Below the pieces are notes generated by a model, which was not told where the DNA came from, did no database searches, and was given only the letters and a program-made list of their open reading frames with translations. Position numbers and translations under genes: made by a program. A DNA stretch of 63,354 nucleotides, the filler included, from Reticulomyxa filosa (lineage: Eukaryota; Protista; Foraminifera), in NCBI GenBank assembly GCA_000512085.1. It is 15 parts of 15 records of this genome, joined end to end, with 100 filler letters (N's around TTAATTAATTAA, not from the genome) between each part and the next. Parts side by side here need not be neighbours in the genome. Positions count along the whole stretch, not along the records: positions 8,405 to 24,215 come from ASPP01005009.1; 14 more parts are not named here. One strand, given 5' to 3'. Below are positions 4,287 through 24,510 of the stretch, one piece after another. How positions within the stretch are numbered: the first letter of the stretch is position 1; each line of letters starts with the position of its first letter.

Positions 4287-4587
4287 TTTTTGTTTACTTG
4301 TTTTTATTTGTTATTATTTGTTGAGTTATTAATTTTTTTTTTTCGACACTTCTAAATTTCCTTTAATAAGTCCTCCTCAGCTTTCTACCATTCAATTCCA
4401 TTTAATCTTACTCCACTTGGATTTTGACAAAACGACCGGGCAAAAAGCCAGCAGAAAATTTTTTGCAAACTCACAAAAATTTGAAGAAAAAAGATAACGT
4501 GCCGTTTGAGAGAAAGTTCAAAAGGAGAGGGGGGAAGAGGAGCATAACATGCACATAAAAAATAAATAAATAAATAAAATAAATCAC

Positions 4588-5560
4588 ATGCCCAAGCCAG
4601 TCAATGGTCAAAAGACAGTGGGCAAACGTAAATTCTCCATCAAGAAAGCGAAAAAAAAGGTTTCAGCCCAGGATAATGATCTGAAAGAGTTGAACGAGAT
4701 CTTGTCGTTAAAAAAGCCGCGTGCCCGGAAGCGCTCCTCAAAGAAGGGCGAACCAGGAACCGAAGCCGGAGGTGGAAGTGGAAGCAAAGGCAAAACATCA
4801 CTAATAGCAAAAGCGTTAAAAAACACGCGCAATGAAACATCAAAAGTGATCCGAATAAAGAAGAGCAAGAGCGAGGAAGAGGAAGAGAAGAGACAGCAAA
4901 AGCAAGAGATGCAAAAGAAAAAAAAAAGACACGATCAAAAAAAAAAAAGTTTCTGAAGAAGGGACATCACAAAAGCAGACAAAGAATTCGGCAGGGCAAC
5001 AAAAGGGACAAAACAAGAAAGCAACAGCATTAAATGTGGAAGACGAGTTGCGATCTCGCGTGCCTAAATATATTCCTAAACACAAAAAAAAAAAAGAAGA
5101 AGACGAAGACATAGCAAAAGAGCAACTGCGAGCATTGCCCGGAGAATTGCTAATTCCGAGATGCGGATTATGCCATACACCTATGGTAGTCGCCCGTGGT
5201 GACCAATGCTATAATGATGTCAATAGCATCAATTGCGATAACTGTGGCAGGGAAGATATCCACGGCGAGGTGTGGCATTGTCCCAAGGGCTCTTCTGCTG
5301 ACAAAAATGATGCGCATCTTGGATACGATTTGTGCAAAACATGTGGGTACTCGCTGCCTCGTGGCCTTTCTCATGCCATCAAGCGCGTGGGGCCCCCTGA
5401 GGACGACTTGGGCTTGATCTTGACTGATAGACAACGCCATCGCCGCAAAACTCATGATGGCTTCGCTTTGTATAAATGGGATGAAATTAAAAAGGAATTG
5501 AGAATTGGATTGGGGGGAAACACTCCTCTTTGTCCTTTTGACTGCGACTGTTGCTTTTAA
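4588..5560 (+). CDS. DUF1764-family protein with Lys-rich N-terminus and internal ZZ-like zinc finger; frameshift at poly-A near 4940
   Basis: The C-terminal RRKTHDGFALY...GLGGNTPLCPFDCDCCF is the DUF1764 signature. The internal segment is CGLC...CDNC...WHC...HLGYDLCKTC. ORFs 4588-4956 and 5036-5560 join across an A-run. Confidence 0.75.
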
Positions 5561-5960
5561 TCTTTTTTATTGTTTGTTATTACACAGTATTATTATCATT
5601 GTCATTAATTTTCTTTCTTTCTCTCTGCTATCCTCTGTCTTCTCTTCAATACTCAATTTGACATGTTTAGTTGATTAAAAAAAGACGTCTTTTTTACTTT
5701 CTCTTTTTTCTTCACTACTTTTTGTCTTGCTCTCACTATAAATCTATCCAAAAACGGGCATAATACCTTGCAAATCTGATTTTCGTTTCGAACGGCGAAA
5801 GCTAACTTTCGTTACCTTGAACCTTTTTAGATGGAAATTCTGTTTAATCAGTGCTCCTGCATCAATCTTCTTGACTCAGAATGCCTTTGGTAATTGATCT
5901 TTTTTCTGGCTTCATGTTTTTCGCACTTCCTATTTCTCTCACTTCCAACACCTCTTCTTG

Positions 5961-6060
5961 NNNNNNNNNNNNNNNNNNNNNNNNNNNNNNNNNNNNNNNN
6001 NNNNTTAATTAATTAANNNNNNNNNNNNNNNNNNNNNNNNNNNNNNNNNNNNNNNNNNNN
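5961..6060. other. Artificial contig spacer (N44-TTAATTAATTAA-N44). The same spacer is at 8305, 24216, 25921, 27851, 29736, 42037, 47016, 48908, 51465, 54050, 56760, 58349 and 61349 (each 100 bp)
   Basis: The same 100-bp block occurs 14 times. TTAATTAATTAA is palindromic and places stop codons in all six frames. Confidence 0.98.
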
Positions 6061-6246
6061 GATAATACAATTCGTTTTTGGGGTATTCGATCAAATAAGA
6101 ATGAATTGTATATGATCAGTGGAGATAAGGAAGGAGATAGTGGAATATATTGTCTTAAATTTATTTTATCGAAAAAGAAGAAGACTTCATATAGTTGGAA
6201 TTTGTGTTATGGTTCAAGGAAAGGTCCCATTCGTATTTGGGGATAA
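6061..6246 (+). CDS. 3' end of WD40-repeat gene (partial)
   Basis: Translates as DNTIRFWGIRSNKNELYMISGDKEGDSGIYCLKF...NLCYGSRKGPIRIWG*. A related terminus occurs at ~51700-51855. Confidence 0.8.
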   Translation, partial: DNTIRFWGIRSNKNELYMISGDKEGDSGIYCLKFILSKKKKTSYSWNLCYGSRKGPIRIWG

Positions 6247-6377
6247 TTACTTTTTGTTGAACAAAAATGAAAGTGTCTTTGTTTGAAAAGTTTGATTAAA
6301 AAGCATGATAATAAAAATTATATCACATAATGGCGTGATTAAGACTATTTTGAAAGCGGACAATATTTTTACTACTG

Positions 6378-7337
6378 TAGTAGATTTCTAAAAAACTGCC
6401 ATACCTAAATGGCACCTATATGAATAAAAGCAATTTTCTTCATGAAAAATAACACTTAAACCTAATTTTTTAAAAAGTATCTACAAATCTTCTAGTTTTT
6501 TTTAATCCTTTTTTTTGTGTGTTTGTTCAATTTTTTTGTATCGTTGACATTTTTAATTGTTATTTTGAGAAATGCTGGCTCTGTCAACTCAGAAAATATT
6601 CCCTCACGAGCTCGAATTTGTAAATTGTTGTAAACATTAAACTGTAGGTAATTTGAAGAAAGTTGTCTTTTTAGATGAAATAAAGATTAATTTGTGCGAA
6701 AGTGATAGAATTTAATACGTTTGGAAAAAGCCAAACCAAGACTTAGTAGATAAAGGTATGATTAAAAGATCAAAGTCTGGTAGAAGCAGTATCAGATTTG
6801 AGCTGCTTTTATGCAAAAGGCGTTGCAAGATAGATAATATAATAAATCGGAAATTTATAAAGGAGATAACATGTTAAACAGTGTTAATTATTGTGTAGAT
6901 AATGAAGATGACTGCTGATTCCAATAAAACAATACGGCATGCCATAAAGCTAAAAAATTAATAAATTAGTTTTAAAAAAGTGATAAAATCTTAGCAAAAA
7001 TAAAAATTAAAAAATCAATTGTTAAAACTAAATTTTTAAAAAGTTCAATTTATTTTAATTTTTTTCAAAAAATACGAAAGGTACAAGGCCAATTCTTTTC
7101 AAAAAAATTGTATCTACCGTGACTTGAAAATTCCTAAAAAAGAAATAAAAAGATTTAAAGGTTTGTTTTATATGCATTTCTGTAAAATTTTGAAAAAATT
7201 GTGTTTTTGATCAATCTAGAAAAAAGTTATTACAAAACTAATTTCATAATTAAAAAACTACAAGATTTATGGGTTATTTTTCATGAAGAAAATCGATTTT
7301 CTTCATATAGATGCCATTTAGGTATGGCAATCTACTG
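6378..7337 (+). mobile_element. Decayed Tc1/mariner-like DNA transposon with ~60-bp TIRs and transposase relic
   Basis: TGCCATACCTAAATGGCACCTATATGAA...TTTTCTTCATGAAAAATAAC (~6397-6453) is inverted at ~7272-7329. The right end is ...CTACTG followed by TA. The interior (~6630-6810) translates KH*TVGNLKKVVFLDEIKINLCESDRI*YVWKKPNQDL...KSGRSSI, which matches the Tc1 region around the first catalytic Asp (WxKVxFSDESKFNLxGSDGxxYVWR). Confidence 0.85.
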
Positions 7338-8404
7338 TATATAGAAGTCTTTGGAACATTGAAATAATATTTTCTTGCATTGTTTTCCAAAAACAGAGCA
7401 AGGTCAGCTTAAAAATTATTTTGCTTAAGTGCAGAAAGAAAACAGTATATTGCATGAGATTTAACAAAAAAGTTATTGATTGCTCAATATTTTGATAAAC
7501 AAAACTGATAATTGCACTGATTCCAAAAAAAGGCCAATACACTTTTTTTAAAAGAACATAAATACCATTCTTTTTTTTAAACATAACTTTCGTGAAAAAA
7601 TAACTTTTTTTTGGCTGTCGGAAACGAGATAAAGAAGACGAAGAAAAATTTCATGATTCAGTAACTTCGAGTATTTGTTTCCAATTATATGTATACATCA
7701 TTCAATAGATAATATTCAATTTTGAGTATTTTTAACTGTGGTATTAATCCTTTCACATCATTAATGGAATTGAAGCAGCTACCAATTTTTACATTTTTCA
7801 GATTTAAATATATTTATATCAATTTGTGTAAGTAAATCTATACATTCATGTGCATATCTCTTTTGAATTTTTTTTTTGTATGATCAGTTTCTTTTGGGGT
7901 AATTACTTTATCTAAAGTAAGTATATGCATACACAAGTCCCTTTCTAAGCCTCCACGTATATATGTGTATATATTATATCAAACATTAACTATAAATTAT
8001 AAACTGTATTGAAAAGGATGTTCTGATTTGATGCAAGTCCTCTCCAACTTGTATTTGAACACATATATCGATAAACTAATATTGGTCTTGTGCAAAATAT
8101 GAGTATAATACCAAGGATTTTTAATGGCATCTCATGCAGTTTCAAACCTTTTCTCAATCCATTCAAGAAAAAAGTATGTAAATTTAACAATTTGAATGCC
8201 ACAGAAGATACTTAAAAAGGTTTTGTTTAATAGAATATTTCTTTCTGCAATAAAGAGGATATTATTTTGATTTTATTTTCTTTTTTAAAGTAGTTAAGAT
8301 AAGANNNNNNNNNNNNNNNNNNNNNNNNNNNNNNNNNNNNNNNNNNNNTTAATTAATTAANNNNNNNNNNNNNNNNNNNNNNNNNNNNNNNNNNNNNNNN
8401 NNNN

Positions 8405-10446
8405 CCGTCTCCGTGCTCAACAGCATATCTTGCATTCGTTCATTCAATACGTCTCGCAATTCGCCATTGTCAGGAGGATCGATGCCTAGGTAATCGCGTA
8501 GAATTTGAATTTCATTGCAAAATTCGACTTGGTTCCTTTGACCGACATTGATTAATTTCAGTGCCAACTCATACGAGTCTGCCAACAACTTGAAGCTGTT
8601 GGGTTCGATTCGCGTGAGAGACTGCGTTTTTTTTTGTAACTTTCGCACTGCAGTTAGAAATCTACTAGCAAAGCTGGGCTGTGTTGAATACTTTTTGCAC
8701 AATTCTACCAATTTAGAATCACTTTTTGATACAAGCTCGCACTTACTTTTTATACCATGCTCTTTCAATTTTTGGCTAAATTCTTTAAAGCCATTGTTCT
8801 GACACCATTGCTATATAACAACAAAGTGACTCGGAGCTTTATTTTTTTTTCAAAAAAAAAAGTAGTTGCAATGATAGCATTAACCTCAAATTCAATTTTC
8901 TGCTGCTCTAAAACCATCTCTTTAAATCTGCGCAAATACCCTAACTTCATCTCTGCTGCTTTGCCAATTTTATCCAATTCCTCTTCTGTTTTATTCAAGA
9001 ACATCTTTGGATCGGTGTAATTCGCTTTGATCAGCGCATCTTTGAACCGGACGATATTGCAACCTTCACAGAATTTCTTTTATCGAATAGGGAGGAGAAA
9101 AAACACAATGCACGTTTAAAATGTAAACAGTAAAGGGATAAGCATCAAAACATACAAACGCAAACCTGCATTTCATCCACAACGCATGCATCCATTGCAA
9201 AAACAGCTTCTTTAAATTTGTTTTTCCTTCATCGGATAAAGATAGCAGTTTGCAAACCTCATCAAAATCCTTCTGTAAACCTTGCTTGTCAGTTATCCCT
9301 CCATCTTCAATAATTGTTTCGATATATTTTTCAAAGCCTTTTTGTTCCAACCACTCTGCAAGGCTGCTTGCTACCAAGTTAAAATTGTTAGTGCAGAATT
9401 GCTCGCTTTGCAAATTTTTTTTGGTCTTTTGTATTTCGTCTTCTTTTGTCTCCAATTGTTTTGTTGCTTCGATGACAATTTGAAATATAGTCAAAGAATT
9501 CTGCTTTAACAGTATTTCTTCCCAAATCTGTTTTAAATTTCGTTCATCAATTGTACTTACTTTATCTTGAGCGTTTCGTAATAATATGTATCCATCACCA
9601 AGATTAAATTGGCTTATTATAAATCGCTTCATTTCCACAAATTCATTGTGCCAATCGTATTTACTGATTTCAGTAGGTATCAGTGAACTGGAAGGAACCC
9701 AACTCACACGATTACCTTCATATTCGAATATCAGACATATCTTTTATTTCATTTATTCGATAACACACCAAATAACTTTTTTTACCAAGCAAAAAAAAAA
9801 GATGGAAAAGGGCAAACGAAACAACAAGAATTTGAAACGTATGCGAGCTATCATTAATCAACATTTTATCAAAGTGATCCTTCAGTTCATCAGCATTTTC
9901 AAATTTATTATCTCTGCTATCTGCCCTTGACAATAAAATAAATGTTTCATTGTTTTTTAATTTGAGACATTCCGATACTTTGTTCCGTAATTCGCTCCAA
10001 TTTTTTTTCCATACATCTTTAATTATCGCCTCATTTGCAGTAAATTCAAATATCATCTCACTACCATTCATTATTTGTAATTTTTTGTCTTTTATTTTCT
10101 TTTGTGTTTTGGCAACAATATTTTTTACTTATCACTCTTTTTTTTTAATCAAAAAAAGACACTCCATTCTTTTTTTTGACTTCACTTTAATTGCGACATC
10201 CAGACTTTTTAATCCTTTTACACAGTCAGAAAATTTTTGAGGATCCGTAGGTAATACTACTTTACCATCAATTTCTATAACAAAACTTTCATCATACAAG
10301 TACTCTGGAAATACGATTCGGATATTATCACATACGCTGTCCAAATCCTTTTGAGAAGGACTTGAGCATATAGCCCTCAGTTTCTTCGTCATTGTCAGAC
10401 TTTTTTCATCGGGAGTGAAAATCGCTATTACCTTTGAAATTGACAT
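8405..10446 (-). CDS. Multi-exon protein with three N-terminal beta-grasp/PB1-like modules and about three SAM-like domains (3' partial)
   Basis: Collinear minus-strand ORFs: 10132-10455, 9718-10071, 9066-9707, 8765-9004 and 8405-8768. SAM-like segments are LAEWLEQKGFEKYIETIIEDGGITD, FKDALIKANYTDPKMFLNKTEEELDKI...MKLGYLRRF and LKEHGIKSKCELVSKSDSKLVELC...FASRFLTAV. Confidence 0.5.
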
Positions 10447-10870
10447 TATTAACAAAGTAAAACAGGAATTATGGTATCTTCTTCTTGTTTGTTATCGTTG
10501 TATTCGCTCAGAGGACAATATTTTGTAGTACCCCTTTGTCTAGTCATTAATACTGTAAAATAGATTTTGCACATTGGCAAAATTGATTACGATTTGGCTC
10601 TAAATTGGAAACAAAGCAAAAAGTAAAATTTGAAGAAAATTTGTTTTCAATTATTTTTACATGAATTTTTCAAATATCAGACTCTAAAAGTTGGCATAAA
10701 ACAAATCAAATAAAAACAAATGAAAATAAAACAAAGAATAAACATTTTTGGAGCCCAGGTTTGATTTTGTTTGAGGAATCTTTGTTTGAGATGCAGCTAA
10801 AAAAAAAGTGAAGAAAAAAGAAAATTGATGCACTTGTTAATAAAAGATGATTGATGTTGGAACAAAAAAA

Positions 10871-11904
10871 CTACATTACGTTCTGGCTATTTTGTGTTTG
10901 TTCCTTCAATTTACTTTGTCTCAAGCATTCTTGCATTCGTTTTTCAGTTTCTTCTACACATTCATTATCACCTTGCCTGTTTGCAATTATTCTGGCTTTA
11001 TCATACCATTGAAAAGCCTTTTCCCAATTTTGTAATTGCATATGAAACAGCTCAGCAATATTCAGGGCTACATCAACGTCTCGAGGATTTAATCGATAGG
11101 CTTTTTCGTACATAGCCAAAGACAATTGATATTCGCACATGATATCTTGTAAGAAAACTCCATAATTGCAATAAAAGCGTGATATTTGATCTTTGGATTC
11201 TTCCCCAGCGTCATTCATTTCATTGTATCTTCGCAATAAATCTTCGAAATGTGCTTCACATTGATATTTTCTGGATTCATATAACATATCCAAAGGCGGC
11301 AATTGTCCGCCGTTGTTGTCTTTCGTTTTTGATTTTTTGCTAATTTTTAAAATTTCCAATAAATGAAGACAAATGTCATATAACGTGTCTGTAATTTTTT
11401 TTTTAATTCGTAATTGTTATGCGGTGATTGAAGAGCAGAACGAGATGCTTCCAATATTCGCAATGTTTCAATTCCACATTCGTATGTTAGTTCATGGTAT
11501 TTTAATTTTTGATCTGTGATAGAACTGTTCTCCTCGTTCTCTTTGTCCTTTTCTCTATCCTTGTTAATGGAAGTAGTAGTACTTGTAGTATTGTTGTCGT
11601 TTTGTCTTTCTTTCTTGTTGTTGCTGTCGGTATTATTATCTTCGTTTGTTTCTGTCTCTTCGTCAGAATCATTGTCAACAACAGTCAATTTCCATTCAAA
11701 AATGGCCTGAGCCATTAGCATTTCGTACTTTTGTCTTGACTTATTTTTGTAATTAAACAGCAGTTCGAACCATTGATTATCCGAGCATTTCAGTTCGTAA
11801 TACACTTTTAATGAATTGTGCGCTGTTTTTATGTCAAATGTGTCTCCACATTCCATCATTTTTTCCATTTTTGTTATTAGTTCTTGTGCTTTTTGCTTCA
11901 TCAT
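10871..11904 (-). CDS. TPR-repeat protein (two exons)
   Basis: ORFs 11347-11904 and 10871-11359 are joined by a short GT..AG intron (~11341-11385). TPR motifs: YCNYGVFLQDIMCEYQLSLAMYEKAYRLNP and ALNIAELFHMQLQNWEKAFQWYDKA. Confidence 0.7.
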
Positions 11905-12045
11905 TGCTTTTTGTTTGTTTTTTTTTTTACTTTATCGTTTGTTATCATTCTCTCAAAAAACAAAACAAACGCAAACAACCTTTGCTTTCTTGATGTCTCA
12001 TTCCAGAATAACGACCTCCAGTGATTGGCAGACGAGGAAGGAGTC

Positions 12046-14634
12046 TCATAATTCTGCGTCAAAATCAATACAAATATATACACATACACAACCCGCAACC
12101 ACAGTAGAAATCTGAATTGGATCTTTGCTTATATGTAATAATAATAATAATAATAATATATCACTCATTTCAACTCTCTCTCCCCTCTCTATGCATGAAC
12201 CTACAAGGAAGACAACAAAGAAGTGAATGGGTAACATCAGATAGCCATCGCATTCTTTTCCGGCGATGACATGCAAGCGATCATCGGTCCCAGTTACACG
12301 AGAAGGCGACATATGAACGAGGGATCCATTGCTCACACGTAACGAAAAGTCTTGGATATAGAGTACAATGGTCGACTCCGTTGCAGATGCGCAATAAATC
12401 AGCACCATTTCATCTTTGTCAAACTCTACCTCGTTCATTTCAACTTTTTTTTTTTTTTTTTGTATTTATACGTGGAATGATAGGATTGTCTCGATAGAGT
12501 ACATGTACACAAATAAACTTTCTTTCCAATGGAGAGTAAGTCGGCCTGGTGCGAGTCGGACTAGTGACAACAACTCAAAGTCGTGAAAGGGGATCAATTG
12601 ATGCAATTGGCACAATTGGATGCGCGAGATAATGAAGTGATAGCCTTGTGCTGGAATTTCGTGTGCGCCAAGTATTTTGCAAGCATACTTTCTTTGGGCC
12701 GATTTCTGCGACTTCACTTGGTAGTGATAGTTTTGGGGACTACTGTGAAGTATCGTATGGTGTTGGTGGTGAGTATCTGGCGATGGCAGTTTGGTGTAGT
12801 CGAGAATAAAGTGGTCTTGGTTTTGTGAGTCCGACGAAGTACTATTGTTGCTCAGCCACGACCACAATGCCATTCGCACGCCTCCTGCAGCGCAATATAC
12901 ATTTTCATACACGTCCAAGCCACTCCATTCATGTCGCTTGCGCAACTGAGCCAGAAATTTATGTTTAAGTGGTTTGCATGTATACACACATATATAAACA
13001 TATACATATATAAATATGTGCATATATGTATATTCATATATGTATATTCATATATGTGTATATGTAGATTATATTTTGTGCAAGTTACAAGCAAGCAAAT
13101 AGTAAACTGTTGGTGGGATGGCGTTGCTTGATTTATTAGTTTGTGGGAGTGTCAAATCTTGGTATCGACGCATTATTTCTTTTTACGGTGTGTATATACT
13201 TTTTTTTTTTTTGCAATGCAAGGATAACAAACATGAGAACAAAACTGTTATGAATAACACAAACGTGGTCGCTTGAAAACGACGTATACGTTCGAATGCT
13301 GTACGCACAGTATTTAGCCTTTTGGATTTTTATGTTTTTATTTTGTTTATTTTTTTGAAGCGTTCAATTAACTTCCATTGTTATTTGTTTTATTTGTTTT
13401 GTTTGTGTCGTTGTATTTACAGTATTGTCTCCTTTCTCTCATTTAAGCAAATGTTATACTTACTCCACAAACAAACAGCAGTACAGAATCCGTGCATGTC
13501 ATGGGGATGTACGTTTGTGTATTGGATGCTTAACAGCATATCTATCGCAATATCATAAACAAAGAAATGAAACATAAAAAACAGATATATTAAATTGGAA
13601 TTAAAAAAAAAAAAAAAAAAAAAAAAGAAACAAGCAAAACTACTGGAGAAGAAGGAACCAAGATGACATTGGAATTACTTTTCCAATAGTCAATGCAATG
13701 GCCAACTGCATCACTAAGCTGTCTGTGTGACAGGTTTAATTTTAATTGTGTTATGTCGGAGCAAAATCTCAAACAACAACGAAGAGAGAGAGAGAGAGAG
13801 AGAAATACACTCACTTAACGTTACATAACAAACAAATAAACAACATGAAATAAACATCAATCAAGGACAACAAAACTTGGCCAGGCAAATCAAATGAAAC
13901 GCAAATTGCGAACTGCAAGTGAAGGAATCCCATACGCTTCGGAGAACACACAGCGAAAAGTGAAGTGTAAATGGTAAATCGCTTTTCGCATTGTCGCTGT
14001 TGAGTCTTGAATGATTGACTTTCACCTCGGTCGGGCTGACGAGAATGGTCAAGTACGATGAAAATGGAATAGACATTGACAATGCCGGAATTGGGATTGG
14101 CACCAATCCCATCACAGACATGCACATAGGTTGGCTTGTCGATGAGGTGAACAACGACAACAGATGCGGAACTAACTCGCGGAGCCGCTTTTGTTGCCAT
14201 TCAAAGGCCGGGGATATTGTCTCAATGTCTCTGCCACTTGTTTCGAGTTTGATTTTCTTCTCATCGTTTTCGCTTTCTCTTTTGATCTCTTGCATTCGTT
14301 GCATGTCCATCAATGGCAGTGACAACAAATGTTCATGAAATTGATCTGCGTCTCTTTCTATTTTTGTTTCTGTTCCTGTTCCAACATTCTTCTTCACTCC
14401 GAATGATTGTATTGATAAGCGCAGTTGATACCGTGTTTTGCTTACATTCAAATTTGATTCGCTTTCATTTGTCCCGCAAAACCAATTTATCCATTCTGTC
14501 TTCTCTTTGTCACCTTCGGTGTCAAGGCTATTTGGCAAATCCTGAAACTGTACTGGTGGGACTACTAGCTGCAACGTGTCTTGTTGTTTTGAGACAACCA
14601 CCAACGCACAACTTGCTTCTTTATCACTTTTCAT
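12046..14634 (-). CDS. Hypothetical multi-exon protein
   Basis: Higher-GC ORF blocks (13861-14742, ~13640-13710, 12466-12960, 12046-12438) are separated by AT-rich intron-like stretches. No family recognised. Confidence 0.45.
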
Positions 14635-15419
14635 TTTGCACAAACTATTTTTTTGGGCTTGTTCGGAAATTATTATCCCACACAAAAAAAAGTTTATACT
14701 TTGTATCCTTGAATGCTTTGTAAGATTGTTCAAATATTCCACACCTGTCTTTCAATTGTTATTCTATGATTAGGATAACAGATAAAAATAATGTAAACTA
14801 AAAATTGTAGCTTTGTTTGGATTAATTAGCTACCAAAATCAAACAAACCCATTATGCTATTGGATTTTGCCAAATATTTCCTAAAACAAATTGTTTTCAA
14901 CACAAGTTTTTCATGTCCCTAGAAGAAGGCTAATTTTACTTACAAAACCATACACAAACTGGCAAAATCTTCACTTCATCAAAAACAAACAAATAGGTTA
15001 CAAAATTAAACACCTATGAAGATTATCAGTTTTCTTATGAAAACAAACGTTCAATCCTTTTTTTGTTTTGAATTATCAAATTTTTTCCATATAAAAATGT
15101 TTCATTTACAACAAGGAAATACCAAAAAACAACTTAAAATTGTCCACCACGTCGTTCAACAAGTAATTTTTGTTGTGATGTTAAACCATTTGACACGTTC
15201 TTCCAAATACTGCTGTCTTTCGTCGACAAACCAAAGCATTAAATATCCCGTTTCCAAATACATTTCATCACAGTGGTATCAGTCAAATCAACACTTTTAT
15301 AATTATTACAGCCCCGTAATCGAAATGTTCTATCTTCTAAACATGAAACAATTTTGGAGATATTCTTCCAGTGTGACATTCTAATAATTGAATCTGACGT
15401 CTGGAAGACGTGTCCCATA

Positions 15420-15620
15420 TTCGGATAGTTTTGTCAGATAAATATGATTGTGTGCTGATAGCACAATTTTCGCAATATATTCTAAAATTTTATCGTGTTC
15501 AGCGGATAATACAATTCAATTATGGGATGCATTATTTGGAAAACTACTTCAAGGATTAGCTTGTCATTCAGATGTGATAGTCAATGCACAATTTTTGCCA
15601 GATGGTTCCAAAGTTTCTTC
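15420..15620 (+). pseudogene. WD40-repeat relic
   Basis: SKILSCSADNTIQLWDALFGKLLQGLACHSDVIVNAQFLPDGSK, with degenerate flanks. Confidence 0.7.
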
Positions 15621-15920
15621 AGAATGTTCTTCAATATTAAAAGTTACTTTCCGATCATTACATCCCATAGTCGAATCATTTTATCATCTGAACAGAATAA
15701 AATTTTGATGAAAATTTTACGTACTTTACATAACTTAGATGCCTTGTTCATTGTCTGTCCAATTCTTTCTATCAAATCTTCAATACTCCCTGCATGTTGT
15801 CTTTTTTTGTTTGCTTTCAATTAATAAGACAATAATGTTTAATTGAATATGGACATTGATAATTGCTATCCTTCACATATATTGAATACCACTTGCATAA
15901 ATAGAATGTTCAAAATTGTA

Positions 15921-16472
15921 CAGTGGAATGCAAAGTAAAGTTGACACATAAAACTGCATCTTGTAGAGATGATTGATTTTCTTCATGAAAAAACAACATT
16001 CAGACATAATTTTTTAAAAATATATATGAATAGTGTAGTTTTTAAATATCATTTTAAATTTAGTTTTTTTACATATTTACTAATTGTTTAAAAATTTTAA
16101 TATTTTGTTGATTCTTGAAATTTTCGATAAAAAGTTAACAATCGTGAATGTGTATTAACTACGAAATTTGCCAACTTTTTTTTAAGCATTTTCAGAAAGT
16201 GCTCAATGCGTAATCATTTTCAAAAAAAATAAAAATGATTAAAAAACACAAATATCAAATTATACTTAGCTAAAAAAAAAGAAAAGAAAAATAAATGACA
16301 AAATATTAAAATAATTATGAAAAATTTAATAAAAAACCAAAATGATATTTAAAAACTACCGATCAGTAGATATTTTTAAAAAATTAAGTCTGAATGTTGT
16401 TTTTTCATGAAGAAAATCAATCATCAATATAAGGTGCCGTTTTATGTATTAACTTTACTTTGCATTCTACTG
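15921..16472. mobile_element. MITE (Tc1/mariner-derived) with ~135-bp TIRs and TA target-site duplication
   Basis: The left end TA|CAGTGGAATGCAAAGTAAAGTTGACACATAAAAC...TTTTCTTCATGAAAAAACAACATTCAGAC is inverted at ~16338-16472, which ends ...TTTGCATTCTACTG|TA. The interior is non-coding and AT-rich. Confidence 0.9.
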
Positions 16473-17339
16473 TAGAATATTGCTTTAACAATAGATGCAA
16501 CTTTTGATTGCTTACGATCATGACAACTAAATGATATTTTATTTAGTGATAGGAATATTGTTAAATCCAATATTAATCAACACTGTCAATTTTGCTTTGG
16601 ATACTAAGCATAATTTATTTATGCAACATGAGCCAAGGATTTTTTTCCATAAATTATATCTCCATCTTGTTTGGGTATGCTATGCATGAGCACTTGGCAT
16701 TCTACAGCAAAAAAAGTTTGAAACTTTTTTTTTTCCAGAGTTGGTTCTTTATCCTTTTCAAGTTATTTGTCCATATCAAGTCTACAATACACTGACACTT
16801 TTATGCTGGACTTTGCACAAACTTGTTTATTCGAATTTATTGATATAAAATGGATTTTCAGTTTTTTCAAAGAGAAAAACTAAGCAGCAAAAATTTTACA
16901 GTTATGTAGTGCAGTGTGGCAGATAAAAACTCGTTTTGAAACTGCACAAACGCTTCAAGCTCCTTAAAACTCAAAACCATACAAACTTGTTTTAAACATC
17001 CGATTGAATTTTGATGCGGATGTACGTCAAACTGCGATATTGAATAGTATATTGATGAAAAAAGCAGCACAACGTCACAGATTATACGCTTTCATCTTTA
17101 CGTTTCAAAAGTTACTAGTTATTTACAATCCAAAAAAGTGGTTCCCCTAAGTCAGTGATTAAACAAAAAAAAACAGATGAACAAGTAAAAATAGTAATTA
17201 CAAATTGATTTCGATTATTGAATATAAAACTAGGGCTGATCAACGATTTAACAAAATCGTTACTAAATATGTCAAGCTTTTTTTCTATCTTTCAACGAAA
17301 TAATTGTCACTGCTAATAATCAATACGTAAGACACAAGC

Positions 17340-18180
17340 CAAGTATTTTCATCTGTTGAAAATCTACACGGGGCATATCAACTGGATAGGCGTTATAAGT
17401 TTCACCAGATGACCGCAGGTTGCTTCAGTATCAAATGATCAAACAGGTTGAATTTGGGACGTTGCATCAAAAAAAGAGTTTCGAACATTCAAAGGCATTC
17501 AGACTGGGCCAATGCTGCAGAATTTTCACTAGATGGCATACTGTTGACTAGACAGAACAATACGATTTTGGAATCTGGAAATAAAATAATGAGGTTGGAA
17601 GAGCAGGGAAATCTAATATTGAACGTAAACTTTTCTCCTAGAGATCACAGTGTTATGTCATGTTCATCTTATGACTCCATAAACGTGTGGTTTGAATTCT
17701 AAGAAGAAATACATATAATGATTGGACATTCAAATTTAGTCAATAACATACAATTTTCGCCAGATGGTCAAATGCTCGCGTCAGCGTCTTATGGCAAAAC
17801 AATTGTATGTGGGATGTAAAATTAGGTGAAATTTTGAAATATTTAAGACAACATTCTGGTCAGTTTCAAAGTAAAATTTTCTCCTGATGGAAAATTTGTA
17901 GTGTTTTGTTCAGATGAAAAACCATTCGCATGTGGGATGTGAAATCAGGGAATTTTCAAAAATGTGACTCACGTATTGTGAATAATATGCAATATTTTCC
18001 AGATGCCAAACTACTGTATTATGTTCATGCGAAACAGTTCAACTGTGGGATATGAAGGCAGATCATGAAATACAAAATTTGAAAGGACATTCGGGTCAAT
18101 GATTGGGCTCAATATCTCTCTAGATGGTAATACAACTGTATCATCTTCTTCAGATCAAGCAATCCGGTTTGGGGATAGCA
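17340..18180 (+). pseudogene. WD40-repeat pseudogene
   Basis: Repeated GHS...FSPDG...S.D.TI.LWD units, disrupted by many frameshifts and stops. Confidence 0.85.
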
Positions 18181-18711
18181 GAACATACAAAAAATGAACG
18201 CAAATACATTTTCTATAAAACTTAATTTTACTAATTGTAAATCTGCAAAACAAGATACAAGAAGGTGCGCTTTGATTGGCCTTTATTTTTCTTTATTTAT
18301 TGTTTTTCGCTTAGAATTGTTGAATTGTTTGTTATTGGTTCAATATCATTTTGCAGCAAAAACAAAAACCCACTTAGGGAGTATGTACAACGTAATATTT
18401 CTGTAATTGCATCTGACACAAGAGTGCAAGAAGTATTTTTTTGAAATCAAACTCACATTTAATAACAATGATGCAGGATATTTGCCAAATGAAATTTTTT
18501 TAATTGTTATTTTTAAATTTTTTCTGTTATTTTAAAGATAAAAATTAAATTTATTTCTTGTTTTTTGATTATTTATTTGCAAAAATAAGACTTTCATTGC
18601 ATTTATTTACCAAACACCTGGTTATTCGTTTGTGGGTTGTTTAAAAAAACTTTAAACAAGATTGCCATTCTAATATCTTCGCAAACTGGTGTGAAAAGAA
18701 GAGATAAGATT

Positions 18712-21700
18712 ATGGCTGGCCAGATAGAAGTGGATGAGGAGTATGTTCAAGGGATCCTTAATGAAAACGTAAAAACAAAAGAAAGCGAAAAAAGGAAATT
18801 CGAGGATAAAAATGGAGTAAAAGAAAAATTGAAAGAATATTACAAGTCGCAAGATAAACTAGCTCCATTTTTTGATGATCCCGGACAACCCATCGATGCC
18901 TATTATATTCGCTTGACTCTTTTAAATCAATATCAAATCCAAGAGCGAAAAGACAGAATGATGAGCAATGAAGAAAATGAAAAATATCCAGAAAATGAAA
19001 AACGTGAAGAGTGTAAGGAAGAGAACGAAAAATGGCCAAATACATTGGATTGTTCGTTAATCTATGGAGGTGGACAAGAGACCATAGAACTGCAAGACAT
19101 TTGGAAAGACACAGAAAATGGATCAAAGGTGCGTCATATTAGTATCCATGGAGAAGCGGGGACTGGAAAAAGTGTGTTAACTCAAAGAATAGCATATTTA
19201 TGGGCAAATGATCAGCTGTGGAGTGACCAATTTCAATATGTGTTGAGCATTCCTTTGAGAAAGATTGTCAACGTTTTTGGCATTTACAATGACGAAATGA
19301 AATATGAAAGTAATAATAATGATGGAATTGAGAATCAATGGTCAAAAGTAATGAATGAGTTGAGTATTCCACAATGGTCTCCAAATGACACCAACTGTGT
19401 TGTGAATTGCACGAATGGGTCAGTGCTGTTGTTATTTGATGGATTTGATGAAATTGCAAATGAAATTGAGAAAAACGTAATTTTGGAGCAGTGGTTGCGA
19501 CATTGTGCTGCTAATGGAAAGTATTACGTGATCATGACAAGTCGTCCCAATGCAATGTGTCCATATCTTAATAATCCACGACGATTAAATATGATTGGAT
19601 TCCGATCACAAGATATTCAAAATTATATCCGTGCATATTTCGAAAATATTGCAATAGATGAAAGTCATCATCACCAAGCAGACTTGATGATACAAAAATT
19701 GAGCAATAATCCAAATTTGAAATTATTGAGTCACACACCTTTGTATTTGCGTTTGTTTTGTCATTTGGCAAAACAGCAAAACAAAGAAATAGAAGAAGAA
19801 GAAGAAGAAGAAGAAGAAGAAGAAGAAGAAGATGATGATGATGATGATGATGATGATGAAAAGAAAGCAAATTCCATCGGATAAGTGGTATACGATGTCA
19901 CTTTCGAAATTGTATGAGATATTGTTGGAAAGCTATATGAAATGGAATTGGATGAAATTGAATGGAACAACATCCAAACCAATTAAACAAACATGTTTAC
20001 AGTTTTTGAGATGGAAATAGATTATTTGTCACTTGTTGCATGGGAAGGATTAAAATGTGGACAAGCAATAATCTCTTGTGAAATACAACAAAGAGTATTA
20101 AATACCATTAAACACAAATATCCACGAAAAGATATTTTTATTATTTCGCAATGGTCTCGAATCAATTCTTTTGGATTTTTACAAGGACAAGAATCCGTTC
20201 ATTCATTGCTTCCAATAAATTCCACGTATTTTCCTCATTTGACATTTCAAGAATGGCTTGCCGCTTATTATTTGGTCAATTGTTTGTATGAATCGAGCGA
20301 ATCGGACAACCATCAACAAGTGTGTGCAATTTTAATCAATCAGCAACTCACTCCAAAATTTGCCGTAATGATTCCATTTATGGCCGGAATATTGTATGAA
20401 AATATCAAAAAAAAAAGATCCATCAGGCTCTGGTTTATTATATTTTTGGAAGCTGCTACACTCTTCACCTCAACTCACTCCTATTCGACAATTGATATTA
20501 CATCTGCATTGTCTGGATGCTTGCAAAGCAGATACAGAGAGTTCATTTCTCCCAGCTCAAGTCCAAAAGTATCACAAAGAGATTATTGACTCATTCAAAT
20601 CCTGGCTTGTTGCTTGGATCAATTTGGACAAAGATGGAGACTCCACTTTTGACCGTTACCACACAGCGATCATTAACAGAACATTGAATAAGCTAATGGA
20701 ATCGCATTTGCCCAATTTTTACTATCTTCATCCAAATATCCATAAATGTATCATTGATGAAATCAAGGCGTTCCAAGAGCAGCTGGACACACTCAATGAC
20801 TACGAGTCGATCAAGACTCGACTCGATGTGTTACAGTACTTGTGTATCTCTACCGAGGCAACAAATATTGTTATCCAGTGCTACAAACAAGGTCTTAGAT
20901 GTCAAGAAAAGTTGGTGTGTTCATTGTGTGTGGAATTGCTTTGCGCGATAGCAATGCGATTGAACGAGAAGCAATTGGATGAAGTGGTAAGCATTTTGTT
21001 GGATGGATTCAATAACAAAGACGGAACTGTCCATAGAAAACATGCAAAATCACTCGCAAAACTGGCACCGCACTTGAATGAAAGGCAGTTGAAGAATGTG
21101 TTGCAACATGTAATGGACGCATTTGACAATGGGAAAGTGGATATTTGCTATGACTGTGCCCACACACTTGCGACCAGCGCATTACAACTGGGTGTTGATC
21201 AATTAGATAATGCCTTCCAATGTTTAATGGATCGATGCAATGCTTATTTTTGCAATATAAAAGCGGAGTCATTCTTACTGAAATTGAGGAAAGGACAATT
21301 GGACAGAGTCTTTCAATTTTTGATCGAGGGGCTCTATGATGAAGATGAAAATATCCGTCGGTCACATGCGGAAATACTCGGGAGACTTGCCATGAAATGG
21401 AGTGACAGGCAAGTGGATGATGCTTTTAGTTATTTGATGGACGGACTAAATGATGGAATGATGACAGCTTTATTCGTGGATCATGTGCAAGAGCACTTGG
21501 AGTGATATCGACACGATTGAATGAAATGCAATTCAATACCACTTTTGAATGCTTGATGCACAAATTAAAAGATGAAAATGAATTGTTCAAATTTTCATAC
21601 ATTATCGCACTTGGACTGCTTTCCACGAAATTAAGTGAGAAGCAAGTGGCTCTAACTTTTCAATGTCTGGTGGATGGATTACAAAACAAAAATGGATACA

Positions 21701-24050
21701 CCTGTGATATGCCCAGACACTTGCTTGGGAAAATTTCCATGAAATTAAATGAAATCCAAGTTGATACTCTCTTCACATGCTTGCTCAATGAATTCAAACA
21801 CAAGATAAAGATACTCGCTTATTATGTGTGACATCAATTGAATGTCTCTCACCGAAATTAAATAAGATACAATTGAATGACATTTTGCAATATTTGATCG
21901 ATGGATTAAGAGATGAAGATAAGCACGTTCGTGGATCATGCACACAAGCACTTGGAGCCATTTCAATTCGATTGAATGAAAACCAACTGAAAAAAGTTTT
22001 TAAAAGTTTAATGGTTACTTCAAACGATGAATACGAAGATAAAATACGTGTGCAAGCACTTAAAAGTATATCTGGAAAGTTAAATAAGATACAACTGTTC
22101 ATGTTGATGATAGATCTGTTACAAAGTGTAAAAAGGGAGCCACCATGGTATGTATGCGAGACATTATCGACAATGTCCGAAGAGGCGTGGAAACAGGTGG
22201 CAGTTGGTGTGCTGCAACAGTATATGCAACTGAAATCGATAAAGGAAAATGAAACTAATGAAGCAAAACAAAAGGGTTCGGTTTGGGAATGGCTGTTCGG
22301 AGATTATAGTGAAGCAATAAGTGAAAAGGACACAATTGAAATTGAGTTATTGTCATTTGGCTTGTTGTTATTTAGTCCTTGTATTCAATTGAATTGCAAA
22401 GATGATAATATCGTCTTAGACGGTTTGAATGAATTGATACAGCACTATAATAAAAAAGCCACGGATTGGGGGTTCCCAATCCGACAACAGACATGGAATA
22501 ACAATGATCTCATTTCACACCCTCATTTGAATAATGATGTTGTATTGCAAATCCAACCTTCAAATGAAAATAGGAATGCACACAAAGGTCATTGCGTTGT
22601 TATTCATGAAGCAATACGATCAGGTAATCTTCCACAATTGCGGTTTGTGTTGCAAAATCATCCTGATATTAATATTAATGCTCCATGTAATGAACATCGA
22701 CAAACACCATTACATTTGGCAATGAATAATAAATATTGGAATATTGCTCGTTATTGCATTGAAAAAGGTGCATGGATTGATGTCAGGGGATGTTCTATCA
22801 ATGATACCATTTTACGAACCCCTTTTGAAGACATTATGGAATTGGTTATGAAACACAAAAATAGCAAGAAGAAGGTGATGATAAAGAATAAAAAGGAGTG
22901 CTTACAAATGATGGAGATGTGCAAATGGATTTTAAGAAAACGAACCATATATCCAATAAAGCAAATTGGATATGCAATTGATTATGTGAAGGACAAAGTA
23001 ATTGATAGAGCTGGTACCGTCAAATCCGACAATAAAGAAAGTTATGAAACATTATTGCAAGAAGGCGCAACTTTCTTGTTGGGAGTGGATCAGAGAGAAT
23101 TACAAAAGGCATTAGTTGAAAATAATTTTTTGTTTGGGACAGTGGATCAAGATATTAAAGCCATAGAATCTGAGAACTCAAATCAAAGAAAATCTAATGA
23201 ATGGCATCCACTGCCATTTCTAATCAAGCGAATATTTTTGTTGTTTAAAATATGTGTCCGATTGAAACCGAAAGGAACAAGTTCTACTAGACCACGAGGT
23301 ACAATATTTGGACAAGCTTACGAAAAAGGCATAAAAGAATTGCAAGTACAACTGACAACATATTGGGATTATATCACTACTGAAGTGTTTAAACATAAAT
23401 GTCCAGAGTTAGTTGATGATTGGAGCTGCAATGTGGTAGATCGCTTGATGAATTTAAGGCCAATGCCATTGAGTTCATGTTGCGAAATGAGTTTGGTAGT
23501 TGGACATGAGGGTCACTGCATTTACTTGAGTTTGTGTAAAACATCCACTTCTATTTTGGTGCGAGTGGACAATAGATTGGTGAAAACTATTCCGTCCAAT
23601 ACACCTTACCCAAACAAGATTATATTAGCAAGTGATAAACAATCTAAATTCATACAACCTTATTTGGTTGCATATTTCCCGTGGAATGGTCCAAACATTA
23701 ACCAAAATAAGAAATGGTTAAAAGAGTATGTCAAAATTACAACTATTTTGAGAGATAGTAATTACAACGAGAGTATGAGATATTTGTATTGTAGTACTAA
23801 TAACAAGTTATTCAATAATTCTCCTCGTGAAGGAAATGTGTTATCAATTGTAAATGAATGGCCATATCGCCTAATTCAAACAGATACAAACAATGGTTAT
23901 CTGCAAAATCACAATATCGGATATCGAATTCGTTTGGATGCTGTTCATTATCAATGGTTTCGCGATCAAGAATATAATAGTTTTGTGTTAAAAAAAAAGC
24001 GAATCCAAAAAAACAACGAAACTACAATACTAGAAATCCAAACAAAATGA
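18712..24050 (+). CDS. NLR-like STAND protein: NACHT NTPase + HEAT repeats + ankyrin repeats + C-terminal CE-clan protease-like domain; at least 5 frameshifts (pseudogene or sequencing errors)
   Basis: NACHT motifs: Walker A GEAGTGKS, Walker B LLLFDGFDE, sensor TSRP, TPLYL and winged-helix FPHLTFQEWLAAYY. HEAT units such as LIDGLRDEDKHVRGSCTQALG. Ankyrin units IHEAIRSG and QTPLHLA. Consecutive ORFs 18637-19884, 19832-20020, 19993-20589, 20396-21505, 21502-21831 and 21828-24050, with no obvious introns. Confidence 0.85.
19792..19860 (+). repeat. Compound trinucleotide repeat (GAA)13(GAT)9GAA encoding a poly-E/D tract
   Basis: Read directly from the sequence. It lies just after the TPLYLRLFC motif of the NACHT domain. 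Confidence 0.95.
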
Positions 24051-24068
24051 AATGTAAAAACACACACG

Positions 24069-24160
24069 TAGTGACAAAGTACTGACACACTAAAATTGCA
24101 CCTTATTAAGATGATCGATTTTCTAAGTCAAAAATCAACATTTTTAAAATATCTGCGAAT
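24069..24160 (+). mobile_element. TIR fragment related to the 15921-16472 MITE
   Basis: CAAAGTACTGACACACTAAAATTGCACCTTATTAAGATGATCGATTTTCT resembles the MITE TIR CAAAGTAAAGTTGACACATAAAACTGCATCTTGTAGAGATGATTGATTTTCT. Confidence 0.6.
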
Positions 24161-24510
24161 ATTCAATTGTTTCGTAATTTTTTTGTTTTTAGGTACTTTT
24201 GTAGTTCTACTTTAANNNNNNNNNNNNNNNNNNNNNNNNNNNNNNNNNNNNNNNNNNNNTTAATTAATTAANNNNNNNNNNNNNNNNNNNNNNNNNNNNN
24301 NNNNNNNNNNNNNNNGGCGCGTGCGCGATAGACCACCTTCAGTTGTAGATCAACAGAATGACAGCACAATGTCGAAAGGCTGGTAGTGTTCAATAGATAA
24401 CACTAGACATGGCAAACCCGCTATCGCGCAGCCCTGCCGTGGCGGCAAGCAATAGCGGACGTGGTTTGATTACAACATTTGCATAAAGTCGATACTATCC
24501 GCTTACAAAA

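Follow-up and report, generated by a model that had tools for sequence, protein, structure and literature searches.

We analysed a 63,354-nucleotide window of DNA from the foraminiferan Reticulomyxa filosa, made of 15 parts joined by filler, and focused on a gene copy at positions 18712–24050 of its plus strand, within contig C5009 (positions 8405–24215 of the window). The copy encodes an NLR-like protein with NACHT, HEAT-repeat and ankyrin-repeat modules and a C-terminal cysteine-protease-like domain (CPLD) that, in a predicted structure, is of the type found in the Legionella proteins AnkH and AnkD. Its present annotation is partial (RFI_05806), and its last frame piece belongs to GenBank entry ETO31318.1, a hypothetical protein of 817 amino acids. 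We found the following features at the locus:

18712–19884, plus strand: first frame piece, with a short leader and the NACHT NTPase (about 19135–19647; Pfam NACHT at amino acids 142–312)
19790–19860, plus strand: (GAA)n(GAT)n microsatellite that codes for an acidic poly-Glu/poly-Asp linker downstream of NACHT (sequence inspection)
19993–20420, plus strand: NACHT-associated helical/winged-helix region (collinear with residues 360–497 of the intact paralogue L014; weak NLRC4_HD2 match, E = 0.005)
20420–22560, plus strand: HEAT-repeat array, broken by the fourth and fifth frameshifts described below (Pfam ARM_TBCD_2nd, HEAT_ECM29, HEAT and HEAT_EZ)
22584–22943, plus strand: ankyrin repeat domain of about three repeats (Pfam Ank, Ank_3 and Ank_2)
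22911–24047, plus strand: predicted AnkH/AnkD-type CPLD with helical cap (AlphaFold2 model, VIA-align and a motif table of 59 paralogues)

The original prediction had read an NLR-like order of NACHT, HEAT and ankyrin modules at this locus, and the Pfam matches confirmed it. Within 18712–19884, the NACHT family (PF05729) matched with 67 bits (cut-off 26.7; E = 2.3e-18) and was covered from profile position 2 to 166 of 167. The Walker A motif, GEAGTGKS, lies at 19150–19173, and a Walker B region, LLLFDGFDE, follows further downstream in the same frame. HEAT-type matches covered 20396–22100, the ankyrin matches fell at amino acids 259–320 of the last frame piece, and the stop codon is at 24048–24050. 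We also observed that the leader is short, as had been predicted: about 146 amino acids precede Walker A, and Pfam recognised in them no significant domain (top match ARM_LIN_C, E = 0.016, below cut-off) and no effector or adaptor domain of the kind that canonical NLRs carry at the N terminus. A motif in this leader is also kept in the bacterial homologues described below.

This gene copy is one of many. In the R. filosa assembly (102 Mb in 50,809 contigs), we counted at least 104 matches to the last 401 amino acids of the locus copy and at least 144 to its NACHT part, with 45–71% protein identity between copies; many copies run off the end of a contig, and stops occur in about a quarter. On contig C11739 (L014:2033–7696) we found an intact, intronless open reading frame (ORF) of 1,888 amino acids from the first Met, in which NACHT, HEAT, ankyrin and C-terminal domains follow one another in one continuous frame, unlike in the locus copy. 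Because this ORF carries both the NACHT and the C-terminal domain, the NACHT and ankyrin-protease parts belong to one gene and not to two, a question that had been raised about the locus. Intronless genes of the family encode STAND NTPases about 1,900 amino acids long, with a short leader, NACHT, a helical domain, HEAT repeats, about three ankyrin repeats and the CPLD. DNA flanking the copies showed no conservation between copies, and we rejected a transposon-like origin for this reason. A literature search of incomplete coverage found no paper joining Reticulomyxa and NACHT and none describing an NLR-like repertoire in Rhizaria.

We modelled the last approximately 380 amino acids with AlphaFold2 (model mc120e203b4b8, built on 32 sequences; pLDDT 80.8, pTM 0.84) and compared the model with 48,161 Protein Data Bank (PDB) representatives using VIA-align. 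The top match was Legionella AnkH (6MCA; Z 13.8, root-mean-square deviation (rmsd) 3.7, 239 amino acids). AnkD, also called LegA15, scored Z 12.9–13.2 (7EW8, Z 13.2), the AnkH and AnkD alignments spanned 217–239 residues, and the next unrelated match was at Z 6.5. Proteins of protease clan CE scored within the background range of the tool over 140–156 residues (XopD, Z 5.6; NopD, 4.6; SENP5, 4.5; SseL, 3.2). A second model that included the upstream repeats (mf3e26703ad33, pLDDT 79) matched ankyrin domains over residues 1–120 (Z 12–13, rmsd 1.6–2.5) and LegA15 again over residues 175–486 (7kj6, Z 12.2); a joint rigid-body match of ankyrin repeats and CPLD to AnkD was not obtained. Foldseek against the PDB returned weak rows, headed by LegA15/AnkD (E = 0.09, TM-score 0.3), and the signal came with VIA-align. 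Given AnkH and AnkD scores of about 13–13.8 set against weak clan CE matches, we regard as solid, for the modelled fold, the assignment of this domain to the AnkH type, and we read it as a probable distant relative of clan CE and not a member of the Ulp1 family.

Side searches with this domain gave two further leads. The ESM Atlas holds an unnamed cluster of 149-amino-acid proteins, 71% of them from Eukaryota, whose members of known phylum are mostly Rotifera; it fits the beta-sheet core of the domain (residues 147–321 of mc120e203b4b8) with a TM-score of 0.69 normalised by the match, and at 0.88 in the feature search. This cluster may be a stand-alone relative of the CPLD core in rotifers. 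Another ESM Atlas lead was ShET2/Toxin_15, at 0.79. We set LegA7 (PMC11423584) aside; it belongs to a family of the HopN1/AvrPphB type with the order Cys-His-Asn.

Of the residues expected in such a domain, the locus copy has His, Asp and Gln but not Cys. His lies at 23514–23516 and Asp 18 residues later, at 23568–23570, exactly as the original prediction had it, and they are accompanied by Asn-Arg at 23571–23576 and Gln at 23877–23879. The QxxxxxC-type motif that had also been claimed was not found downstream of His and Asp in this copy: Gly (23895–23897) replaces the family Cys, Gln (23904–23906) occupies the family Arg position, and the lone downstream Cys (23790) has no preceding Gln. We scored conservation of these residues in an alignment of 59 non-redundant R. 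filosa CPLD copies. His was kept in 49 of 54 copies, Asp in 55 of 58 (the rest having Glu), the following Asn in 55 of 58 and the Arg after Asp-Asn in 52 of 58. Gln was present in 55/58, Cys six residues after it in 55/59 (three copies have Ser and one Gly), and Arg three residues after Cys in 54/58. The locus copy is the sole one of the 59 with Gly at the Cys position. We considered the other conserved Cys, that of the HLYC motif at 23790, as a nucleophile and rejected it because it is missing from all distant homologues but one.

In the model, a beta-strand opens with the His, the one after it closes with the Asp, and a long helix begins at the Cys position. The putative triad of AnkH (H243/D258/C324) occupies the same topological positions as the modelled His, Asp and Cys of the family, and is carried by the motifs rGHa, D/NRg and GNCSWANV (PMC6712400). 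The family motifs, GH-x-IY, D-N-R-W and N-N-C-x5-N-V-G, resemble these published motifs by inspection; the locus copy lacks the Cys.

The original prediction had gone further and proposed a true clan CE protease of the Ulp1/XopD type, a SUMO or ubiquitin deconjugase. The order His-Asp-Gln-Cys, with spacings of 18 between His and Asp and six between Gln and Cys, speaks for such an enzyme, XopD, NopD, SENP5 and SseL are among the structural matches over 140–156 residues, and the authors of the AnkH structure compared AnkH with XopD, naming this clan CE enzyme as its nearest protease fold (PMC6712400). However, Z values of 3–6 are background for a VIA-align search, a large helical cap surrounds the core, and about 100 residues separate Asp from Gln, far more than in Ulp1 by the residue numbers that accompanied the prediction. 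Pfam run on the last 400 amino acids matched no family, including Peptidase_C48 and other CE families, NCBIfam gave no relevant family and three unrelated matches at E = 0.05 or weaker, and profile searches of PDB sequences had no Ulp1/C48 or other CE match. Membership of the Ulp1/XopD family is thus not shown by these searches, and we consider a true clan CE deconjugase very unlikely; the link to the AnkH fold, which had been made alongside it, held up.

An AnkH-type fold does not by itself name a reaction. AnkH is a core effector of Legionella; its genetics implicate the whole triad, and protease activity was not detected in vitro (PMC6712400). LegA15 has been reported as an atypical GTPase, in which H268A has little effect and GTP binding and hydrolysis need Cys361 and Arg291, the latter adjoining the triad Asn, with Lys367 and Arg408 also named (PMC9757750). 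The protease or ubiquitin/SUMO deconjugase output that had been proposed for the locus therefore lacks proof even in the nearest relatives of solved structure (PMC6712400; PMC9757750). The C-terminal domain could instead be an atypical nucleotide-binding or GTPase module like that of LegA15, which would give a protein with a second nucleotide switch coupled to its NACHT NTPase. LegA15/AnkD is structurally as close to the domain as AnkH (Z 12.9–13.2), its GTPase depends on Cys361 and Arg291 and little on His (PMC9757750), and the family retains both the Arg after Asp-Asn and the Arg three residues after Cys. By contrast, the equivalence of the family Arg residues with Arg291, Lys367 and Arg408 of LegA15 is putative, the well-kept family His (49/54) is not required by a GTPase mechanism, and the AnkH genetics point to the triad as a whole. 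On this evidence a GTPase-type domain seems rather unlikely to us.

We next consider the state of the locus copy itself. An ORF listing, three-frame translation and tblastn with the intact paralogue together resolved its coding stretch into six frame pieces joined by five frameshifts of +1 or −1. The pieces are as follows:

18637–19884, plus strand: frame 1
about 19880–19990, plus strand: frame 2
19993–20589, plus strand: frame 1
20396–21505, plus strand: frame 2
21502–21831, plus strand: frame 1
21828–24050, plus strand: frame 3

The frameshifts between them are:

19857–19995, plus strand: frameshifts 1 (about 19857–19880) and 2 (about 19975–19993), with frame 2 between (match to L014)
20407–20416, plus strand: frameshift 3, a run of ten A, frame 1 to frame 2 (sequence inspection)
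about 21450–21458, plus strand: frameshift 4 (GGAAT context; tblastn frame change)
about 21800–21804, plus strand: frameshift 5 (CACAAGAT context; tblastn frame change)

Between frameshifts 1 and 2, frame 2 fits the SKLY..WNW segment of L014, and frame 1 has three stops. The breaks sit inside continuous coding sequence and are neither introns nor in-frame stops; we rejected an alternative genetic code because they are frame changes. The original prediction had described 5.3 kb without introns. We found no introns, and the intact paralogues are likewise intronless single ORFs, but the uninterrupted frame that this description implied gave way to the five frameshifts. The first ORF of another paralogue, L016, ends in a shifted reading of the equivalent (GAA)n(GAT)n-type tract, and since its frame also breaks there, the poly-Glu/Asp linker looks like a recurrent frameshift hotspot, whether real or from assembly.

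The locus copy differs from the family at 11 of 111 conserved sites, among them the Cys-to-Gly and Arg-to-Gln replacements, and its tip branch in the CPLD tree is the longest in its subclade (0.51). Taking together the five frameshifts, the loss of the near-invariant Cys and Arg, the changed conserved sites and the long tip, we conclude that it is probably a non-functional pseudogene. Another explanation is that the gene is intact and functional, its frameshifts being mistakes in the draft assembly, and that a CPLD with Gly in place of Cys acts beside active paralogues as a catalytically dead decoy or regulator. Each of the five breaks shifts the frame by a single base and lies in an A-rich context, in one case the A10 run; the correct frames of the locus copy contain no in-frame nonsense codon; many other family copies also give split matches; the assembly is fragmented into its 50,809 contigs; and the 9.9% deviation at conserved sites falls within the family range of 3.7–14.2%. 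However, four of the five sites have short A runs of two to four bases, where consensus errors are uncommon, the same assembly holds intact ORFs of 1,860–1,890 amino acids, and the locus copy has also lost two near-invariant active-site residues and has the longest tip of its subclade. We therefore regard an intact gene as unlikely and treat the locus copy as a probable pseudogene. Two runs labelled as synthetic metagenomes, both from one study, contained short contigs identical to the locus gene at 19059–19235 and 23704–23858; they are unlikely to be independent of the reference assembly.

To look beyond R. filosa we searched 1.84 billion representative sequences with HMMER. Eight proteins matched at 24–31% identity to the query, and the remaining matches were above 40%; among named database matches, the long proteins were all from R. 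filosa, and a further profile search for short homologues gave nothing new. The distant homologues differed in how much of the architecture they carry. P0060 (2,001 amino acids) is a complete NACHT-HEAT-Ank-CPLD protein. P0048 and P0047 have HEAT-Ank-CPLD, and a separate NACHT gene precedes P0047 upstream. P0091 and P0087 consist of ankyrin repeats and CPLD only, and P0089, a partial protein of Candidatus Jidaibacter acanthamoeba (WP_039457936), is a CPLD alone. In PADLOC, run on full-length proteins, the R. filosa protein matched no defence model, and a bacterial homologue gave two weak single-model matches.

Several of these genes lie on contigs with bacterial neighbours. A TARA metagenome scaffold (L021:1–14893) carries three giant HEAT-containing genes in a row, at 1–2761, 3115–9777 and 10001–14893; the second encodes NACHT-HEAT-Ank-CPLD and the third HEAT-Ank-CPLD, and P0048 comes from this row. 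Its neighbours are EF-P, HU, RNase E/G, a TLC ATP/ADP translocase, Hc1, seryl-tRNA synthetase (SerRS), an HslV-type proteasome protein, L28 and L33. The SerRS is 52–59% identical to proteins of Bacteroidota, mainly Cytophagales and including the endosymbiont Cardinium, and this affinity, together with the TLC translocase, suggests that the scaffold comes from an uncultured marine intracellular Bacteroidota bacterium. We found that L021:3115–9774 is collinear with L014 all the way from leader to CPLD (NACHT part, 28% identity, E = 6e-62), that P0060 is likewise collinear with the R. filosa protein over its full length, and that both bacterial proteins are 22–31% identical to it. Both also carry about 235 extra N-terminal residues (L021:3115–3834 and P0060:1–245), which have no Pfam match and are missing from the R. 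filosa proteins. On a JGI metagenome contig (L024:5832–11156) the architecture is split between adjacent genes for a 650-amino-acid NACHT protein and a 1,051-amino-acid HEAT-Ank-CPLD protein. On an 83-kb bacterial contig (L023:1667–10043), P0091 (680 amino acids) lies about 3.7 kb and three genes downstream of an 865-amino-acid OTU-domain protein, in a neighbourhood that also holds SSB and UvrA; these OTU and Ank-CPLD genes may be a cluster of effector-like genes directed at eukaryotes.

In a maximum-likelihood tree of the CPLD, with an arbitrary root, 24 R. filosa sequences formed one clade with support of 100/100 and a long stem. Together with the bacterial homologues, this clade supports one transfer of the gene between the foraminiferan lineage and an intracellular bacterium, with birth-and-death expansion afterwards. 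Transfer from bacterium to foraminiferan is favoured, though not proven, by the lack of introns and the deeper diversity of the bacterial sequences. The original prediction had suggested acquisition from an intracellular bacterium or retroposition; bacterial contigs with the same architecture favour the link to intracellular bacteria that it drew. We also considered whether the locus contig might be DNA of a bacterial endosymbiont contaminating the R. filosa assembly, as its genes are intronless and its closest non-foraminiferal homologues lie on bacterial contigs. However, more than 100 copies diverged to 50–65% amino-acid identity would not fit a bacterial genome, and the R. filosa sequences group together in the tree on one long stem. 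The GC content of the locus gene is 35.5% and that of its flank 33%, against 48–50% for the bacterial L021 and L024 genes, and the flanks hold fragmented TPR-type ORFs and not compact bacterial genes. Contamination is therefore extremely improbable, and we take the gene as part of the foraminiferal genome.

The remainder of contig C5009 contains short minus-strand ORFs in differing frames at 9066–14742, which have the appearance of exons or fragments of a neighbouring gene. TPR matches in one of them, at 10871–11359, were weak and under Pfam thresholds. A highly AT-rich stretch at 15400–16900 (GC 24–25%) separates these ORFs from the NACHT gene.

On balance we favour the view that a very large R. 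filosa family of NACHT-HEAT-Ank-CPLD proteins has a decayed member at this locus, with the mechanism and the transfer origin outlined here, and we hold this slightly less firmly than the pseudogene status alone. By analogy with STAND proteins, the HEAT array of intact members, and perhaps the ankyrin repeats too, would bind a ligand, after which the NACHT module would exchange nucleotide and oligomerise as in other STAND NTPases. Clustered Ank-CPLD modules might then be switched on by proximity as the output, a putative Cys-dependent hydrolase for which proteolysis or deconjugation would be one option and LegA15-like GTP hydrolysis another. A broader proposal is that a giant STAND gene of bacterial origin was taken up by foraminifera and grew there into an NLR-like repertoire, over 100 members strong, with a C-terminal AnkH-type Cys hydrolase as its output; we offer it tentatively, as a possibility that is more doubtful than the family-level view.

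Several points weigh against this reading. Domain profiles searched with HMMER against PDB sequences, at E values up to 10, matched neither AnkH nor any CE protein, and the placement of the triad follows secondary-structure positions in a predicted model. The undetected protease activity of AnkH and the reported GTPase activity of LegA15 both bear on the proposed output, and the effector role of the CPLD, like the sensor role of the HEAT array, is one that we infer by analogy. Reads across the frameshift sites were not found, no indexed run having usable coverage and the two sets of short contigs missing all five, so that some or all frameshifts could be assembly errors, one of them lying in the A10 run. 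Finally, the tree is unrooted and so does not orient the transfer.

The result for the locus itself is sobering, as it is probably a dead copy. At the level of the family, what emerges is an NLR-like STAND protein with a predicted AnkH-type C-terminal domain that is common to the foraminiferan and to bacteria, which appear to include at least one intracellular bacterium. Because related full-length genes occur on bacterial contigs, in one case next to an ATP/ADP translocase gene, the family offers a concrete case for studying gene exchange between symbionts and a protist host. It also supplies many naturally varying AnkH-type domains, some of which carry another residue in place of the candidate nucleophile Cys. 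If the reading is correct, these proteins would be inverted NLRs with an effector that shares its fold family with a core Legionella effector, and the AnkH fold would be linked with STAND signalling in a protist host as well as in endosymbiotic bacteria, providing a new system in which to study the function of the fold.

Among known systems, Legionella AnkH and AnkD are by far the best structural matches. They share with the R. filosa proteins ankyrin repeats directly upstream of the domain, the order His-Asp/Asn-Cys, the local motifs GH, D/N-R and N-C...N-V, and, in the model, a His that opens a strand, an acid that closes the next and a Cys before a long helix. By contrast, the R. filosa domain has about 43 more residues between the acid and the Cys, forms the C-terminal end of a 1,900-amino-acid NACHT-HEAT protein and not a secreted Dot/Icm effector of 430–460 amino acids, belongs to a foraminiferan host and shows no sequence homology detectable by HMMER; the locus copy, in addition, lacks the Cys. 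With clan CE (Ulp1/SENP, XopD, NopD and SseL) the family shares the residue order, a consensus Gln six residues before the Cys and a weak similarity of the core fold that lies in the background range (XopD, Z 5.6 over 156 amino acids; SENP5, Z 4.5 over 150), but the R. filosa domain is far bigger, bears a helical cap and a long insert, and matches no family model.

Animals, plants and fungi are known to have large NLR-like repertoires, and bacteria to have NACHT defence proteins; NLR repertoires are usually large, diverse and rich in pseudogenes. The R. filosa family is similarly large, diverse and pseudogene-rich, and it resembles NACHT-type STAND NTPases in its NACHT module, Walker A and B motifs, helical domains and long C-terminal repeat array. 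It differs from NLRs and other STAND proteins in that its repeats are HEAT and not leucine-rich, WD40 or TPR repeats. In place of an N-terminal effector, of which none was recognised, the R. filosa proteins carry an enzyme-like domain at the extreme C terminus, after the repeats.

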